Assembly (NCBI GenBank): GCA_001949185.1
Contig: BDGG01000014.1
Coordinates: 1,085,378-1,149,377, forward strand
Length of the DNA: 64,000 nt
Direction of reading: 5' to 3'
From: Ramazzottius varieornatus
Lineage: Eukaryota; Animalia; Tardigrada
Part shown: piece by piece, positions 16,403-52,074 of the stretch
Layout of the letters: every line of letters begins with the position of its first letter
Numbering within the stretch: the stretch's first letter is position 1
The notes under the pieces: model-generated
Told to the model about the DNA's origin: nothing
The model's database searches: none
The model's input: the letters and a program-made list of their open reading frames with translations, nothing else
Translations under genes and position numbers: made by a program

Positions 16403-16505
16403 GTTGCACATTAGACTTGGTTGATTGCTGCCAGAACGTATGGTTGATTAGTTAATGGGCACTACTTTCAGTTTGTGCAGCACGACGTTCAGCAGCTCGT
16501 CAGTG
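16403..16505. mobile_element. Partial copy of the 127-bp MITE found intact at 51948-52074
   Basis: ~100 bp near-identical to 51973-52074, including the right TIR ...cagcagctcgtcagtg. A possible remnant left end cactgatgagctg lies at 16311. Confidence 0.8.
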
Positions 16506-16910
16506 CATATAAACAAAGGCTTGCTATGCTTTGCCTTTACCGTCGAAATGTCTTCAAGGGTTTGCGAACTATGCCTTCAACGTGTCTTCGCTGCATATTG
16601 ACTAAAACTAGCTCAACCAAATACCACGCCACCGAACACCGTACCCGCACATCGCTACTTGATTATTCGATTTCCTTTTTTCCGCACGGTAACCGCTGAC
16701 TGGGCGACATACCGTGAGATTTCACGAATTCCCCGCTTCTCCGTATCTCTTCGATTCATGATTCTTCGAAGTTTTGACACCTGCCGTAACCTGCGAAATC
16801 AAAAGCCATCTTCATCACAAGTTGCTGCCTGGAACATCCCCTCCCATTGTGCGGACAATCACTGTTTGTCGGTTGAGTGGAAAAAGCGTGTCGTTCTGTT
16901 TTACAGCGCC

Positions 16911-19220
16911 ATGGACAAGACACCGACGTGCAGTGCCCCTTCACACGGAAGCATCCCTCCGCCGATCATGACCATCAACCCTGCTCCCAGCACAACAAAC
17001 AGAAACATGAAGAAGGAGCTGAACGACCACACAGAAATGCGTCTCGAAGATTTCATGAAGAAATTCAGCATAGGTACGTCTCTAGAAAACCTCCGATTGA
17101 TGATCACCCAGATCAAGTCGCGCATAATCTCGACCCAAACGAAGTTGCGGAAAGAGGTCGGCAGCTGGTCACAGCTTCGCACTTTCAGTGTCGAATCAGT
17201 TCTTTCTCCCGACTGCTTTTGCTGATTACTGGTGCTTGTATTGCAGGTGACGATGTATGGGTCATCAGTAAGGGACAGTGGCACGAAGCTAAGATCATTC
17301 TGATCGAAATGTACAAGTATCTCGGAGATGAGACGACATCCGTGCCCATCTACAGAATCCATTACCCGGGTTGGGGAAAACGGTAAGCAGGCTCCGACAT
17401 CCATCGGATGCGGCAGAAGGAAGATGTCTGATGCGTTCTCCTCTTCAGGTGTGACGAGTGGATGTGCAGCGATTCGCTGATGTTACAGAACACAGAGATC
17501 AACGCCAAGGCCTCGGCCGAAAACGGCGCCTTGATGGAGGCCAGGTATAAACTCTGGGGAAAAATTCTCGTTTGTTTTCCCCGGATAGACTTATGCACTA
17601 CGTTGCGTGATGTTTAATTTTGCAGTGGAATCAAGAGTATGAAGACCGGAAAGAGAACGGCCCAGGCAGACAAGACCAGTTCTTTGCAGATGACGGCGAA
17701 AAAAGCCAGTGTCAAAGCTCCAATCCTGTGCCTATCAACGGAGTATCTCCCGCCAGAGGCCGAGGAAAAGGTGGAAGCAGAGGAGGCGCGACTGCCGAAC
17801 CTAGGGGTAACTTCAAAAAATATTACCTCTAGTGCCGAAGCAGTCGAAGTAATGCGCGAGTTCAACCGAACATTCCGGTAGTGTACCTTGACTTTCGAAT
17901 GTCTGGAAAATAATTTATGCTGCATGTTCATCCCATTGAATTTTCCATTGAATTTCGCTCACAGGATATTCATTTTCGATATTTTTCCAGGTACGACGAG
18001 CAGTAAACAAGCGAGAATTGATGCAGGACTGTCTGCGGGAGATAATATTTCAGCTGCGGGCTGTCAGTCGCTGGAGCCTCCCAGCATGGCTTCAGCGCTC
18101 GAAAGCGAGCCGACCACCTTGACCGACAACGGAAAAGCGCACAGCTTAGAGCCAGCCAGTTCATCTGAGAAGTCGATTAACCGACTGGAAAACTCATCCA
18201 GTATCAAGAAAACCGAAAGAGCGAAGAACACTGGTGCGAGGAAAAAGGTGCCAGCCGGTGAGAGCTATTTATTACGGTTCGAAAACCGCAGCGATGACGG
18301 AAAATCCAGCACAGGCTATTACGTGTTTGCTTGTTTTTCAATTAGCCATGACCGAAATGCTACCTGTGGGCACCATCGTTACAGCCGTTCCTGCTGGAAG
18401 TCCTGCCGGAACTCCAGGTCAGCATTTCATGGTCCAAAGCAAGGTGGAGAACGGTAAGATCGTCCCCTTCCTGGTGCCCGTCCAACAAGTTACCGAGGTG
18501 GAAGAAACTGTTCCCGAAGGTTCGTACCGTAGTTTCAAGTAACAGGGCTGGATTGTAGTTATTTCTCTGTAACGGGTGCTGGCATTGCATGAACGGTCTG
18601 TACAGGCCGGCGAAGTGGTTACTGTACGAGCCGGGGAAGTGGTTGCTGTACAGGCCGGCGAAGTGGTTACTGTACGAGCCGGGGAAGTGGTCACTGTACG
18701 GGCCGTCCGAGTTGTCTGCATACAAGCCAGCGGATTAACGCAGATCCGCGAGATTCTACTGTTATCTGAGATAACTATGTTTCAATGACAAAGTTGGTTA
18801 CGTGATCTGTTCTATAGGTACAGTGACTATGGATATGCTTGAGCAAGAACACTCACCAACCGAAAAACCACGGAAGATGCCACGGAAGGAGAAGGATGTT
18901 CTTACTAAGATTCGCCGACAATGGTAAGAGGCTTTTAAGAGACATACGGTTTTGGTTCTTTGCAGATGAAATATCATGAATGTCATGACTTGTATTCTGT
19001 TTAGGGTTATGGGCAACTTCCGGAAAGCGAAATTCTGCGACCTGTCAAACAGTGGGATTAGTACCTTTTTCGCCAGGTACTGTTTTCAGTATTGCAGATG
19101 CATTTTGCAGTGGAAACTGAGCTGTCCAGTGAGATACGTGGAAGCGTCTTGTGTTGGCTTTTGGATGTTGAGTCTTTACACAGCGATTGTTCATGTGATA
19201 AAGACGCATTCGAGGTAACG
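16911..19220 (+). CDS. Transposon-borne chromo-barrel (Tudor-knot) domain protein, multi-exon; 3' end uncertain
   Basis: Spliced exons 16911-17073, 17247-17382 and 17449-17544 give KKFSIGDDVWVISKGQWHEAKII...YRIHYPGWGKRCDEWM, a MRG15/MSL3/Esa1-type chromo-barrel. Further phase-compatible exons run to ~19076. No MRG domain follows. Confidence 0.75.
18600..18706 (+). repeat. 24-bp minisatellite (GTACAGGCCGGCGAAGTGGTTACT) x~4.5 with 48-bp higher-order pattern, intronic
   Basis: Tandem units read directly, alternating caggccggcg / cgagccgggg variants. Confidence 0.95.
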
Positions 19221-22200
19221 CAATAACACCGTCGCCACCATTCTAGAAATCTTGCTCTGTGTGAGTGACGAGTATGTCAAAATTCGCAGGTCTTTCGGCA
19301 AACAAAGTTCGGCACCCGGGGCATTGGTAACCCATACCAGGATTCGGATATTTCTTGACGACAAACTTGTGGGTACTGTCACGCCATGGTCTACCTAGAA
19401 GAAACAAGTATGTTGTCCCAGACATGGTAGTCTAAATTCATGCATGGTCACTACGCCGGCGTGTACATCAGTAGGGACAACTACGCCAGCGTCTCCTTTG
19501 CTAACACTGACGGCATCTATGGAGGTTGACCAATTTTGCAACTCTCGCTCTTGTAACAGTATCCTTCTTCCTCGAAGTTCATTTCGACAGCTTCCTTGCC
19601 TTTACAGGTTGTGTAACCGGATCCACTCAGATTCTTCATCTTTCGCCCAACCTTGTGACCACCAACACTTCGCACGAGCCAGCTGCCGGAGGGACGCAAA
19701 TTCTTCTCTAATTTCAGCCATTCCACCATCTGCACCAAGTTTCCGGTCGCCGCGGTCACGGCAATGATATGTTTGCAAGCTGGGTCTTTATTCTGAGTGA
19801 ACTGCAAACAACCGCATTTACCTTCCCCGGAAGTAGTGCGGATCTCGACGAAGTACCAGCAGGGCTTCTTCTTGTCTGTAGACCGAACTTTCCGAACGAC
19901 CGAGGAGTTCCATTTTCGTTTATAATGGGTCGTTTCTTCCGCGGAAAGCTCAACCATCCAGCCTTCGTCAGCAGGGCCGCCCATAAGCTCCACGGCCTTG
20001 TCCCAGCTAACGCGAAACATGTCGGGAAGTCCGGTGGTGGCAAAGTCCGTCAGCACATTGGACGGTCTTGATCCATCTCCCGACGAATCGACCTATAAAC
20101 ATAATGTCACAGTTACAGACTAGCACTATGTACCTGTTCTACTATTAGACGAACCAACAAGACTTCACCGGCACAAAGCGCGGCAGCTCTGCCCGCGTAG
20201 GCTTTGGCAACTCCGACGGCGGACAATGCAGCATCTTCGCCAACAAAACGTACTAACACCACCGGCCTACTTGCAACAACTCCGCTGGTACTAACTTTTC
20301 GACTCGATGCAACGACAACCATGGTGTTCACGTTGCACTTGGAGGACAACCGTTGCACTTTGGACATTATGTGGGTATTGTCGTGCGCTTTCTGTCGCGA
20401 CAAGAGAAGGTCTTCTCTGTACTGCTCGGCTATTCTGTATCGGCCTTGATCTTTCAGGGCCTGGAACATGAACACAGTTTCATCGGCGTACATCTTGAGC
20501 AATCTCTCAACCACTTCCCGGGGATCGTTGTGCGTGCCAAAAAAGGCTCTGAGCGTTTTGTTCATGGCCTCGGACAGATTAGTATTAGGAAGGTCGCGCG
20601 AGAAACCCATCTTTTCACGTGCCGGTAGGATTAGTTTCTCGACAAAGTTCTTCTGATGGTGTTTTTCAAACCAGTGCTGGAATTTGTCATCGCCCAAAGA
20701 GCTCTTCACCTCTTTCCACTTTTGGAGATACTGCTCTTCCGAAACTGAATCTACAAGCCCTAGAACATGCTTCCTCACACCAGCTACGTTGCGGTGGTAC
20801 CCCAGTACACAGTTCAGCACGAACGACACATGGGAAGAGGGTACGGGCTTTCAGAGGAAGTATCTCTTGATACCATCTCGGATGCGTAGAACGCAGAGCG
20901 TATGGTTGTGTCGAGGGAAAGCTTCGCGGAATGCTTCGTACAGTGCTCGCTCGCCATCGATGATGAAATCGAAGCTGAAGTCTTTTGACATCACATCGAC
21001 ACCTGCATTCACAAGACATTCTCGGAGGTAATTAGCGAACACCGACAACGAAGCTTTCGACTTCCTCTGAGTTAGGCATGTTGGTCCGATCAGCAAAGCA
21101 GGCTTTCCTGTCTTCTCATTCACAAAATAAGAATGTTGGATGACTATGACCACCAGATACATGTTGCACAGCTGGAAAGTCAAATCGATCTGCAAGCGAA
21201 GCTTCACTGCAAACACAAAACCAAAGGATTAATACCCCATTCAGGCGCGCATCACTACAAGACGAAAATAAGCTCAGTCTACAGTGCCTGTTGATAAGGC
21301 GACCGACAATATTACCGGCTTGCACTTCAAGAATTCCGTCAAATGTACACTGACAACTCTACCGGCCTATGAACGAACTACTCCACTGGCATGTAGATTA
21401 CCAAAACTGCCGGTGTTTACAGCAGAAACATCGCTGGCGTGTACTTTGTCAAGATTGCCGGAATAGGCAATCGCTCTGACCTTAATCGACTTACACTTTA
21501 GCTTTTGGTCGCCGTTCGTCGCTATCAGTCCAACGTGGTACGGATCTACCACGACGAAATTCTCAGATTTCGATCCATCCTCGTTCTGGTACTGACGAAG
21601 AATGACCCCTTCCTTCCTTCGCAGGTAGCTTTCCACGTCTTCTCCGTATGTGTTCTCGTTGACTGTGTTTCTGATGGTCATGACCTGTCGCATATCTTTC
21701 GGTCCATAATATGGGTTCACCTCGCGGTCGATTTCGGGTATAGTTGACGCAACTTCGAGAACGATGTCTCTAGGGCTCATGGGCTTGCCGCGTGCAACAG
21801 ATGACGCTAGCTTCTTGATCGCGCTTGTGATGGTTTTCCCTGGTGTAGGTTTTCCCAGGCGGGAATGGTGCGATCTTGCTTTCGTCGGACCATACATACT
21901 GGATCACGAAGAAATTCTCGACTGGCTTGCTGCAGCCCTCTGACGACACAATTGCAAGAAGACGTCGCTTGAAGCCATTGGGCTTCCCATTAGGTCGACT
22001 GTACCAGTCCTTCTTCATTGGATAAGAACGGCGTCTGGTCGTCATCATGCTTGCTACCACTACCAAACCGTTCATTTGATTCTCTCCAGCTGCCGTTCCC
22101 GTCGTCCAGAATTAGTCCGTAGATCCGTTCTCTCTGCTCGGGCCGGAAGGAAACGGCAAACCACGCTTGACCTTGGAAGCGCTGAGGTATTCGGTGATGT

Positions 22201-23445
22201 TTGTACGCATCAAGGACTTCTGGATTACAAAGCCAGGCGAGAACTGACGCATCGCTTTCCACCGTTTGGAAACAACGATAATGATTATCTCTGCAGAAAG
22301 CAATATGATGTGAGTTAGATTTCACTACGTTGACAACTCCGTCGGCGCGCACACCAGCATCCTCATCGGCTCATACAACGGCATCTTCACCGGTTCATAC
22401 AGTAACAACTCTGCCGGCATGTATTGAAAAGAAGCAGCTTGACTCACATCTCATAACATGGTCCCAGAGCGCTGTCCGCCACGGGAGCTCCTAAGGCAAG
22501 ATTTCCACGTACAGAAAATGTAACCACTGGCTGAGATAATCGTTTTGGCTCATGTTCTGATACAGAAAACGACGTCTCCCTGCAACAGGTAAGTGATCCA
22601 GTTAACGCTGGAGTCACTTGTGCGCTGCTCATAATCCCGACTACTTACGGGGTAACGCACATGTGCACTGGCTCATTAGCGCTGCTCTGCGTGGAGGCGC
22701 CGGTGATAGCTGATGCGTCGTCGTCGTCGTCGTCACTTTCCAACATATATACAACCGACTTACCAGCATTCTTCACCGAAGAGTCTTTGAAGTTTGCAAA
22801 TTTCCTGAAATAACCAATCGATATATTGCTTGCAATGAATATCGCATTTGTGGACTACATAGTGCAAATAAACCACACAAACACCGTACATAACGTCATC
22901 TCAATCGGCGAGTACGGCATGTACACGGATTTCGCCGGCGTGTGGTCTGCCGTCTCCACCGGCGCGTATAATGACAACTGAGACGATATGATACGGACTT
23001 CGCCGGTTTGTGCAGTGGCATCTCCGCCGGCGTGTAAAGTGATAACTTCGACGAAGACAACTTATACTTCGACGAAGACAGCTTATACGAAGACAACTTC
23101 GCCGGCGTGAACATTTGCAGGTCCAGCGGTTTATAAGTGTTTTTGAAATACGTTGGAAAGTTTGAAAACGTACCTTCCAACTCCAGAAGAGGTGCTCGGA
23201 ATATTATGATCGTCGTCGATGACAGAATTCATAGTCAGTTCGTCCGAATCGTCTTGGTTGTCCCATTCCGCGTCGAAAGCGCTTGTAGAACGATCGGGGA
23301 GTATATCTTGACTGATGTCCTCAGTTTTCAGGCGTTTGACACCCCCACTGCAGCCACTGCTGTTGGGCGAACCAGATGGGAAGATACCATCGAACACTAT
23401 CTCGTTGTCGTCATCCTCATCCGAAATAGACGGTGAGTGTTCCAT
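19045..23445 (-). pseudogene. MULE transposase with SWIM zinc finger, spliced, disrupted by frameshifts and stops
   Basis: IDLTF (D1), IIDGERALYEAFREAFP..LCVLR (D2; CxxH reads CVLR), TNLSEAMN (E), SWIM CGC...CKHIIAV, C-terminal CPGC...H...YH..C. In-frame TGA at 20851 and TAG at 19243; frame changes around 22000 and 21850. Confidence 0.85.
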
Positions 23446-23810
23446 GGCGAGGTGGCAGCGAAAGTCAAAACAGATCCAGGAAGAAAGCGAGGAGAAAGGC
23501 GGAAACAAGTGAAAAATAAATTTTCTTGCGTTGCAAACCCAAGCAACTGGCTTGGCCGTGGCCGCTATTTCGGCTGCGGCGTTTCAGTATGCTGAGCGTA
23601 CGTCGTTGTGAGGGGTACGAGTTACGGTGCGGTGTTACGATTATTTTTCGAAATTGTGGTGCAGTACGGTTACGAGTTTAGTAGTTGTCTGGATACGTTG
23701 AAGGTTATACTGAAGGCAAAATTCGCAAACCCCCGAAGACATTTTGACGGTAAAGTGCTGCGAAGGCAAAGCATAGCAAGCCATGAACAAAACAGAAAAA
23801 ATCAGCACAA

Positions 23811-23957
23811 GCACGACGAAAAATTATGGGGCCAGTAAAAATTATGGGACCAGTCCTTTTCCTTACAGCGGTACGGAAGCACGTACGTACACCACCGATT
23901 CATAGTAATGCACTTTTTGCCGTCTTTTCCGCCTGGTCCCATAATTTCCTGTCGTGC
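23811..23957. mobile_element. Small inverted-repeat element (MITE-like)
   Basis: gcacgacgaaaaattatggggccag (plus tandem copy aaaaattatgggaccag) pairs with ctggtcccataatttcctgtcgtgc at 23933-23957. Confidence 0.6.
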
Positions 23958-44471: not shown

Positions 44472-45353
44472 ATGTCGACTCTCCCAGCGGTAAGTTTGCT
44501 GTGGCCAAAGCGTAGCGATATACATTGATTGAGCAATGTGCTTGATTGACTGAGTCTCGCTTCCTCCTTGCAGGTTTCCATGCTGGTCGTCGTGGCCTTG
44601 CTGGCCAACCTTGACTTGTCTGTGGGCCAGTTCGGCACCGTCTTCCCCTTCAACATGGTCCCTGGTGGTCTTCGCATCCCCTTCATCGGTGGAGGCTACG
44701 CTCAACCAGCCGGCGGCCTGATCGGTCAAGGCTTGGGCTTCGGTGGACAGCAGAATCAGGGCTGGAACGCACCACCTCCCGCCGTTGTCCAACAGCCCGT
44801 CGGATGGCAAGCCCCAGTCGTCGTCCCTCCTCCTCGCCCAGTAGGATGGAACGCCCAGCCAGTAGTTCAACAGCCCGTCGGTTGGAATGCCCAGCCAGTG
44901 GTCCAGCAACCAGTCGGATGGAACGCCCAGCCAGTGGTTCAACGACCAGTGGGATGGAATGCCCAGCCAGTGGTTCCAGTGGTTCAACAGCCGATGCGCC
45001 AGCCTGTAGGATGGAACGCCCAGCCCGTCGTCCAGCAGCCCGTCGGATGGGGCGCCCAGCCTGTGGCCCTTCAGCCCGTGGCCCAGAACATCGGATGGAA
45101 CGTCAAGCCTGCTCTCCTCCCCGTCCCCGTCGTCCAGTCCGGCTGGGGATCCTCCGTTCCTCAAGTGTTTCCTCAGTCCCAGACGGTCAACACGCCTGCC
45201 CTCCCAGCTACCAACATCCCCACGGCCCCGCTACCTGCAGCTCCGACCAATACGGCCAACGCAGCTGCCTTGACGACCCAACCCGTCCAAGTTCCCACCT
45301 TCCAAGCGTCACCGGCTATCGCAACGTCCGCCAACGCTGCCTACTCCAAGTGA
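44472..45353 (+). CDS. Secreted Q/P/V-rich protein with PVGWNAQPVVQQ repeats (structural protein-like)
   Basis: Exon 1 MSTLPA (44472-44489) spliced to a signal-peptide exon; about 8 copies of a 12-aa (36-bp) repeat; TATA-like aatataag at ~44298. Confidence 0.82.
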
Positions 45354-51947: not shown

Positions 51948-52074
51948 CACTGACGAGCTGCTCAACATCGTGTTGCATATTTGATTTGGTTGATTGCTGC
52001 CAGAACGTATGGTTGATTAGTTGATGGGCACTACTTTCAGTTTGTGCAGCACGATGTTCAGCAGCTCGTCAGTG
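51948..52074. mobile_element. 127-bp MITE with 30-bp TIRs and perfect 8-bp TSD
   Basis: TIR cactgacgagctgct(c/g)aacatcgtg(t/c)tgca; TSD gccttgta at 51940-51947 and 52075-52082. Confidence 0.92.

Follow-up and report, generated by a model that had tools for sequence, protein, structure and literature searches.

Short tandem arrays with a unit of about 24 bp occupy introns of both genes of a Mutator-like element (MULE) in the genome of the tardigrade Ramazzottius varieornatus, and the core of the unit is retained in a diverged sister lineage of this element. The arrays are possibly dense clusters of protein-binding sites on the element DNA, similar to the targets of plant VANC proteins; we give this reading a probability of about 0.45. 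The element, assigned here to MULE family A, is located at 16518–23782 of the studied window (64,000 nt, contig 14:1085378–1149377 of an assembly of 55.8 Mb in 200 contigs; positions without a contig are those of the window) and contains two convergent genes, an accessory gene on the plus strand and a gene of a Mutator-like transposase on the minus strand. An original prediction, made from the letters of the window, had described the arrays as element-specific, always in the sense orientation and possibly recognized by an element-encoded protein.

Tandem Arrays in Both Genes of the Element

Tandem Repeats Finder (TRF) identifies a clean plus-strand array at 18598–18705 (period 24, 4.5 copies, 84% matches), where a homogeneous array had been predicted in an intron of the accessory gene. 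A higher-order period of 48 bp is also found there (95%), and the exact 24-mer occurs at 18600 and 18648, with none in 100 shuffles. The degenerate reverse-complement arrays reported for five intervals of the transposase gene are present as well: when the sense strand is set in rows of 24, the 24-nt register is visible in all five, and the cores at 22342, 22366, 22390 and 22414, as well as those from 21362 to 21458, follow each other at exactly 24 bp. Hence both genes carry arrays, in one accessory intron and five transposase introns (I1 and I3–I6, Table 1).

The consensus of the array unit is GTACRNGCCGGCGRAGTTGTYNNY. With a threshold of 16 of its 21 specified positions, 18 matches are found in the element and none in the other 56.7 kb of the window, in agreement with the earlier remark that the unit is not seen outside the element, while 200 dinucleotide shuffles of the element yield 0.14 matches on average and two at most. 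With the threshold lowered to 14 of 21, the transposase introns (1,222 nt) contain 20 sense units and no antisense ones, and the exons (3,016 nt), no sense units and one antisense unit. Autocorrelation is strongest at lag 24 in the accessory intron (together with lag 48), I1, I3 and I5, and lag 24 is second to 48 in I4, so that one of these two lags dominates in all six array intervals except I6, which consists of two units 30 nt apart. No lag-24 signal is observed in intron I2 or in the exons. The spacing of units ranges from 21 to 30 nt, and every array of the window element is sense to the gene that contains it.

Intronic Position of the Arrays

As judged from splice signals, reading-frame arithmetic and homologue spacing, with exons searched singly, the arrays are intronic and not coding. 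GT..AG boundaries were set by eye, and the passage of the frame between flanking exons was then checked by modulo-3 arithmetic. All six transposase introns, among them the five predicted array intervals, have lengths joining the upstream and downstream open frames; the flanking exons are in differing frames and are joined only by taking out the GT..AG interval, again in six cases of six. In complete copies of the element, I1 and I3–I5 contain stop codons in all three frames, and I6 has one stop-free frame in two of the three copies containing it. The I3 donor GTGAGT is replaced by GTAAGT in one subfamily, and the intron has a pyrimidine tract in addition to its CTAAC branch site. The donors of I3 and I4 are conserved in the sister family B, described below.

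A homologue from Paramacrobiotus metropolitanus (XP_055356392) can be aligned both before and after I5, with 31 of its residues remaining between the two alignments; the corresponding stretch of the window is 296 nt long, that is, I5 plus exactly 31 codons. The exon following I6 is homologous to the C-terminus of the same protein. As the distant homologue can be aligned only from the start of exon 5, the I4 junction rests on the conserved GTAAGT donor and the frame rule. The least certain points of the gene model are the precise position of the I4 donor and the weak I6 donor. The array content explains the length of these introns.

The original prediction named exonic repeats of eight codons as an outcome that would speak against it. 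A coding repeat of eight residues is ruled out by the stops in I1 and I3–I5, the variable spacing, the frame arithmetic and the homologue spacing. Public entries predicted from other family A copies (RvY_05205, RvY_05206 and RvY_14067, R. varieornatus) should be used with caution, as the gene models wrongly translate parts of the arrays: two public models run partly into arrays, and a third skips one array. Proteins GAU93239 and GAU93240 (RvY_05205 and RvY_05206) are in fact one transposase copy split into two genes, and their translation passes through array sequence, e.g., through I5 and into I4.

Distribution of the Motif in the Genome

Scanning of the 55.8-Mb R. varieornatus genome with a two-unit pattern yields 25 matches, compared to none for the reversed control; the 13-nt core yields 25 matches against one for the control, eight of them being lone matches outside the three transposon families considered below; and the pattern GCCGGCGN{14,20}GCCGGCG, 38 against none. 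A 72-nt three-unit profile gives at least 73 matches at E ≤ 1 among the 150 of 7,930 first-look candidates that were scored, and all strong matches (E < 0.1) within these 150 fall in copies of family A or in three copies of a PIF/Harbinger family. Nearly all array matches belong to three transposon families, MULE family A, MULE family B and this Harbinger family, with nearly all arrays in the two MULE families. The motif is thus transposon-specific, though not exclusive to one element. A generic host minisatellite is ruled out by the near confinement of the genome matches to these families and by the empty remainder of the window. The word “element-specific” was too narrow, as the sister MULE and the unrelated Harbinger family share the core.

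The seven family A copies that were compared (85–96% identity) have arrays at identical places, with stable numbers of units in introns I1 to I6 (7, 0, 4, 5–6, 2 and 2, respectively). In full-length copies, extra units follow the stop codon of the transposase at a distance of about 140 nt and are oriented like the transposase. Family B is a diverged sister MULE lineage (loci L043 and L019–L023, copies on contigs 20, 22, 50 and 103), whose accessory exons are 68–71% identical to those of family A. Its introns homologous to I1, I3 and I4 (locus L043) carry arrays of approximately 24 bp with the same core; their periods in TRF are 24 (6.7 copies) and 48 (2.3 copies). In the homologous accessory intron of family B the array is antisense to the accessory gene, that is, it points the same way along the element as the arrays of the transposase gene. 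Therefore, the sense orientation, correctly described for the window element, is not a conserved property; a single direction throughout an element may simply come from direct duplication, of which it is the default outcome.

The Harbinger family is represented by three copies (L040:3356–6592, that is contig 1:2958755–2961991, L041 and L042; 94–96% identity) of a 3.2-kb element with two genes, a DDE_Tnp_4 transposase and inverted repeats of about 50 bp. Three to four units of the family A type are found in all three copies about 155 nt past the transposase stop codon, between the two convergent genes and in the transposase direction. Comparison of the Harbinger and MULE elements reveals nothing in common besides the array units; their accessory proteins are unrelated, and no shared DNA-binding protein was found. 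The Harbinger transposase gene has one short (~70-nt) intron that contains no array. One more array with the same 7-nt core, a tandem 25-bp unit GCCGGCGGCCCAAGTCGCTCGTTTT, is located at contig 14:377243–377299.

Conservation of the Core and Family-Specific Flanks

The core shared by families A and B is GCCGGCGA, 8 nt built on the palindrome GCCGGC. Over 439 codons the exons of the two families are 58.5% identical at the protein level, with 38% identity at third codon positions, and four-fold sites of conserved codons are only 26% identical, i.e., fully saturated; intron sequence beyond the arrays cannot be aligned. In the homologous introns I1, I3 and I4 the 8-nt core is nevertheless identical, and its spacing is about the same (~24 bp). 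Since a related family has kept the core beyond the point at which neutral sites lost all similarity, the motif probably serves as a signal for binding. Judging from these comparisons, a minisatellite drifting neutrally could hardly account for such retention.

The flank of the core differs between the families, being GCCGGCGRAGTTG in family A and GCCGGCGA[G/C][G/C]TC in family B, and arrays in separate introns of one family share the flank variant of that family. This pattern of a common core and family flanks fits a recognition motif co-evolving with a family-specific reader. The arrays also show signs of tandem turnover: higher-order duplications of 68, 48 and 21 bp, three to five units in the accessory intron among four copies, and an I1 that is 25 nt longer in one subfamily.

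Possible Function of the Arrays

The argument from constraint is new and quantitative; the mechanism that we suggest would be as follows. One short motif, the GCCGGC core extended to GCCGGCGA with a family-specific 3′ flank and repeated about every 24 bp, would be retained by selection in clusters within those interior parts of the transposon that do not code for protein, namely in introns and in the stretch past the transposase stop codon. A sequence-specific protein would bind the arrays on the element DNA and mark the element as “self,” which could serve transcriptional activation, anti-silencing or transposase recruitment. Tandem duplication would expand and contract the arrays, and they would reside in introns as the only place where coding sequence stays unbroken. 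As families A and B have different flanks, an element-encoded binder is more likely than a host protein; the Harbinger family might borrow the factor of family A. Of the earlier suggestion that the arrays are cis-acting recognition sites, the recognition part gains from the core kept across saturated families, the family flanks and a layout similar to that of VANDAL elements and VANC proteins, while an anti-silencing role is something that we only infer.

Several results weigh against this interpretation. The pieces of the accessory gene contain no DNA-binding domain, no VANC homologue and no RFX-like domain in searches of Pfam (E ≤ 10), PDB sequences and the protein atlas with short exons searched apart, so that no domain of the element that could read the motif was found. 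The inverted repeats of family A have homologues in family B, and a distinct repeated TTGCCTTC-like motif is conserved in both; because of this different conserved motif, the array motif is not a transposase site of the known type. The array motif as the terminal binding site of the transposase is also rejected by the similarity of the inverted repeats to the unit, which is at the background level. A distance of 24 bp between units does not correspond to an integral number of turns of the helix. Finally, core and flank change at equal rates among the seven family A copies, with no signal of purifying selection; this is expected for dead, neutrally decaying copies, and the comparison has little power.

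The motif might act in RNA rather than DNA, if a sense motif in the transposase pre-mRNA or at its 3′ end bound an RNA-binding protein controlling splicing (intron retention), export or stability and thus limited the transposase to certain cells. All transposase-gene arrays of families A and B and the Harbinger array past the stop codon are indeed in the transposase sense, the arrays occupy the middles of introns and leave splice signals intact, and public gene models choose differing donors within them. Splicing-enhancer motifs are purine-rich, and the purine-rich flank G[A/G]AG[A/T]TG resembles them. Still, uniform direction is also produced by direct tandem or dispersed duplication, and the array of the homologous accessory intron is sense in A and antisense in B. 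Folding of three array introns shows no excess of RNA structure compared to shuffles (z = +1.16, –0.27 and –1.01), and the arrays have no match in Rfam. The flipped orientation, ordinary folding and lack of an Rfam family tilt the interpretation towards DNA, making a role in the transposase transcript rather unlikely. It is also doubtful that the arrays have no function at all, that is, that a minisatellite was born once in an ancestral intron, spread by ectopic conversion or repair and was kept by tandem turnover, with the core reflecting mutational or conversion bias. The degeneracy of the arrays, the tandem dynamics listed above and the lack of a core-versus-flank difference in recent copies are all consistent with such a history. 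DNA transposons readily acquire short foreign segments during gap repair, and one family A copy does hold a Sec7 fragment. Against it, the 8-nt core and its ~24-bp spacing have survived saturation in no fewer than three homologous introns per family, although other positions of the unit diverged; separate introns within a family share one flank variant, and the arrays are nearly absent elsewhere in the genome.

A host factor, such as a repressor or a chromatin-boundary protein, could read the motif, or host small RNAs could target it, the host having learned to recognize these transposons; presence of the same core in two unrelated transposon superfamilies without a common protein is what one would then expect. 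We consider this quite improbable, since a motif serving only repression should be lost by the transposon and not kept across saturated divergence, the flank varies by family, whereas one and the same motif would be expected with a single host factor, and the Harbinger units, being of the family A type, are better explained by capture from family A. Within the DNA-binding interpretation, a more specific version would make these MULEs an animal counterpart of the plant VANC system: an element protein reads the intronic GCCGGCGA arrays as a family self-address, keeping the element active or guiding the transposase, the flank co-evolves with this protein, and Harbinger has copied the family A address. 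Candidates for the reader are the chromo-barrel accessory protein, by itself or together with another protein, and the transposase, if it has a second activity. This full scenario is speculative and, on balance, unlikely.

To our knowledge, plants (VANDAL/VANC, Spm/TnpA) are the only organisms in which experiments have demonstrated sequence-specific self-recognition of transposons via dense motif arrays in their own non-coding DNA. The animal genome studied here has a plant-like layout combined with evidence for long-term constraint, and the motif seems to have been copied by a second superfamily. Should there be a binder, the 24-bp unit, the 55.8-Mb genome and the low number of copies would make a small testable animal system, and a route to study self-addressing of transposons, their escape from or recruitment of chromatin regulators, and mutual exploitation.

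Comparison With Known Systems

The binding targets of VANC21 are arrays of uniformly oriented motifs located in VANDAL21 introns and between its genes; these motifs vary between subfamilies (Hosaka et al., 2017, PMC5735166). Both VANDAL21 and the elements studied here are Mutator-like with more than one gene, and have a short motif at high density, in one orientation and in tandem, in introns or non-coding parts; in both, motif variants differ between related families and tandem duplication alters the arrays. In VANDAL21, no other part of the genome reaches the motif density of the transposon family, whereas here nearly all arrays are in MULE A and B, but the unrelated Harbinger has the motif too. 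Further differences are the animal host, the lack of a VANC homologue, the accessory gene encoding a chromo-barrel (Tudor-knot-like) protein without a recognizable DNA-binding domain, and the unit itself, 24 bp with a GC-rich palindromic core, compared to the 9-bp YAGTATTAY of VANDAL21; binding and an effect on chromatin are only predicted here. The arrays may therefore work like the VANC system without being a member of it, as the layout is similar and the defining protein absent.

A preprint (10.64898/2026.08.24.746577) reports binding of TnpA and of a MULE transposase to dense clusters of motifs, some of them in other transposon families. In these Spm and AtMu1 systems dense family-specific clusters are an address for an element-encoded regulator, and the reported cross-binding to BRODYAGA2, another transposon family, parallels the Harbinger case; however, the clusters are mainly terminal or subterminal there, while here another motif is found at the termini and the arrays lie inside the element, in introns. 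Rehavkus and foldback elements (PMC6446971; 10.1101/2024.12.02.626372) are MULE-related animal elements with a 9-bp target duplication and family-specific tandem repeats, but their repeats lie beside or inside the inverted termini, whereas the arrays described here are short (two to seven units) and split among six introns. A subterminal minisatellite of the Rehavkus type is ruled out, as no array unit is found within about 600 bp of either element end.

Introner elements are intron-generating repeats of algae, fungi and some animals. They resemble our arrays in that a related sequence occurs in many introns in the sense direction, and differ in that the arrays are confined to transposon genes, are found also past stop codons and, in family B, in antisense, and do not include the splice sites in the shared unit. 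As the arrays are not spread through host genes, introners are ruled out.

Other Features of the Element and the Window

The inverted repeats of the element are 62–72 bp long, and the window copy is flanked by a 9-bp target-site duplication with one mismatch (ATAAACAAA/ATGAACAAA). The transposase has a weak match to the MULE domain of Pfam (E = 0.002, below the Pfam cut-off), its homologues are MULE transposases, and the public name of the protein of the copy is “SWIM-type domain-containing.” Pieces of the accessory gene show a weak Tudor-knot match (E = 0.0079, also below the cut-off). The window copy is decayed: in addition to the in-frame stop and the internal deletion (Table 1), it has an additional base near 22019 and a small rearrangement near 21840.

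TABLE 1. Coordinates of features of the MULE family A element in the window.
Feature	Position	Strand	Remarks
Left terminal inverted repeat	16518–16589		MULE family A element, window copy
Accessory-gene intron with the clean array	18520–18817	+	298 nt, GTTCGT...TATAG
Homogeneous 24-bp array	18598–18743	+	Five good units at 18600–18719 and a degenerate sixth; 48-bp higher-order period; sense to the accessory gene
Internal deletion breakpoint, window copy	19159–19160		Two full-length contig 2 copies have 1.5–2.5 kb extra here
Transposase intron I6	19395–19530	–	136 nt; weak GTCAAC donor; two units at 19443–19520
Transposase intron I5	20093–20295	–	203 nt; nearly all of it about six degenerate units with small indels
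In-frame TGA	20851–20853	–	Window copy only (GGA in other copies); from copy comparison
Transposase intron I4	21207–21494	–	288 nt; GTAAGT donor kept in family B; 5–6 units at 21302–21468
Transposase intron I3	22291–22447	–	157 nt; GTGAGT, CTAAC branch site, CAG; four units with exact 24-nt spacing at 22329–22424
Transposase intron I2	22580–22648	–	69 nt; sole array-free intron of the transposase gene
Transposase intron I1	22805–23173	–	369 nt; about seven units at 22892–23112; 68-bp higher-order duplication; 21-bp duplication only in the window copy
Right terminal inverted repeat	23711–23782		MULE family A element, window copy

One full-length copy on contig 2 (L034:5041–5820) has an extra insert of about 1 kb with an open frame matching the Sec7 domain (E = 1.3e-16); by this match, the insert is a captured fragment of a host gene. 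The flanks of the window element (16403–16505 and 23803–23900) are small dispersed repeats with dozens of matches in the genome, one more copy being located at 51972–52074, and the left flank repeat has a palindromic tip.

Two other tandem repeats were observed. A 36/72-bp repeat of about four copies with 84–88% identity occupies 44838–45079 of the window. At contig 3:3221429–3221601 there is an unrelated, very regular 24-bp repeat GCCGGAACCGCTGGAGCCTCCATA in at least seven copies, which looks like a coding repeat rich in glycine, serine and tyrosine.

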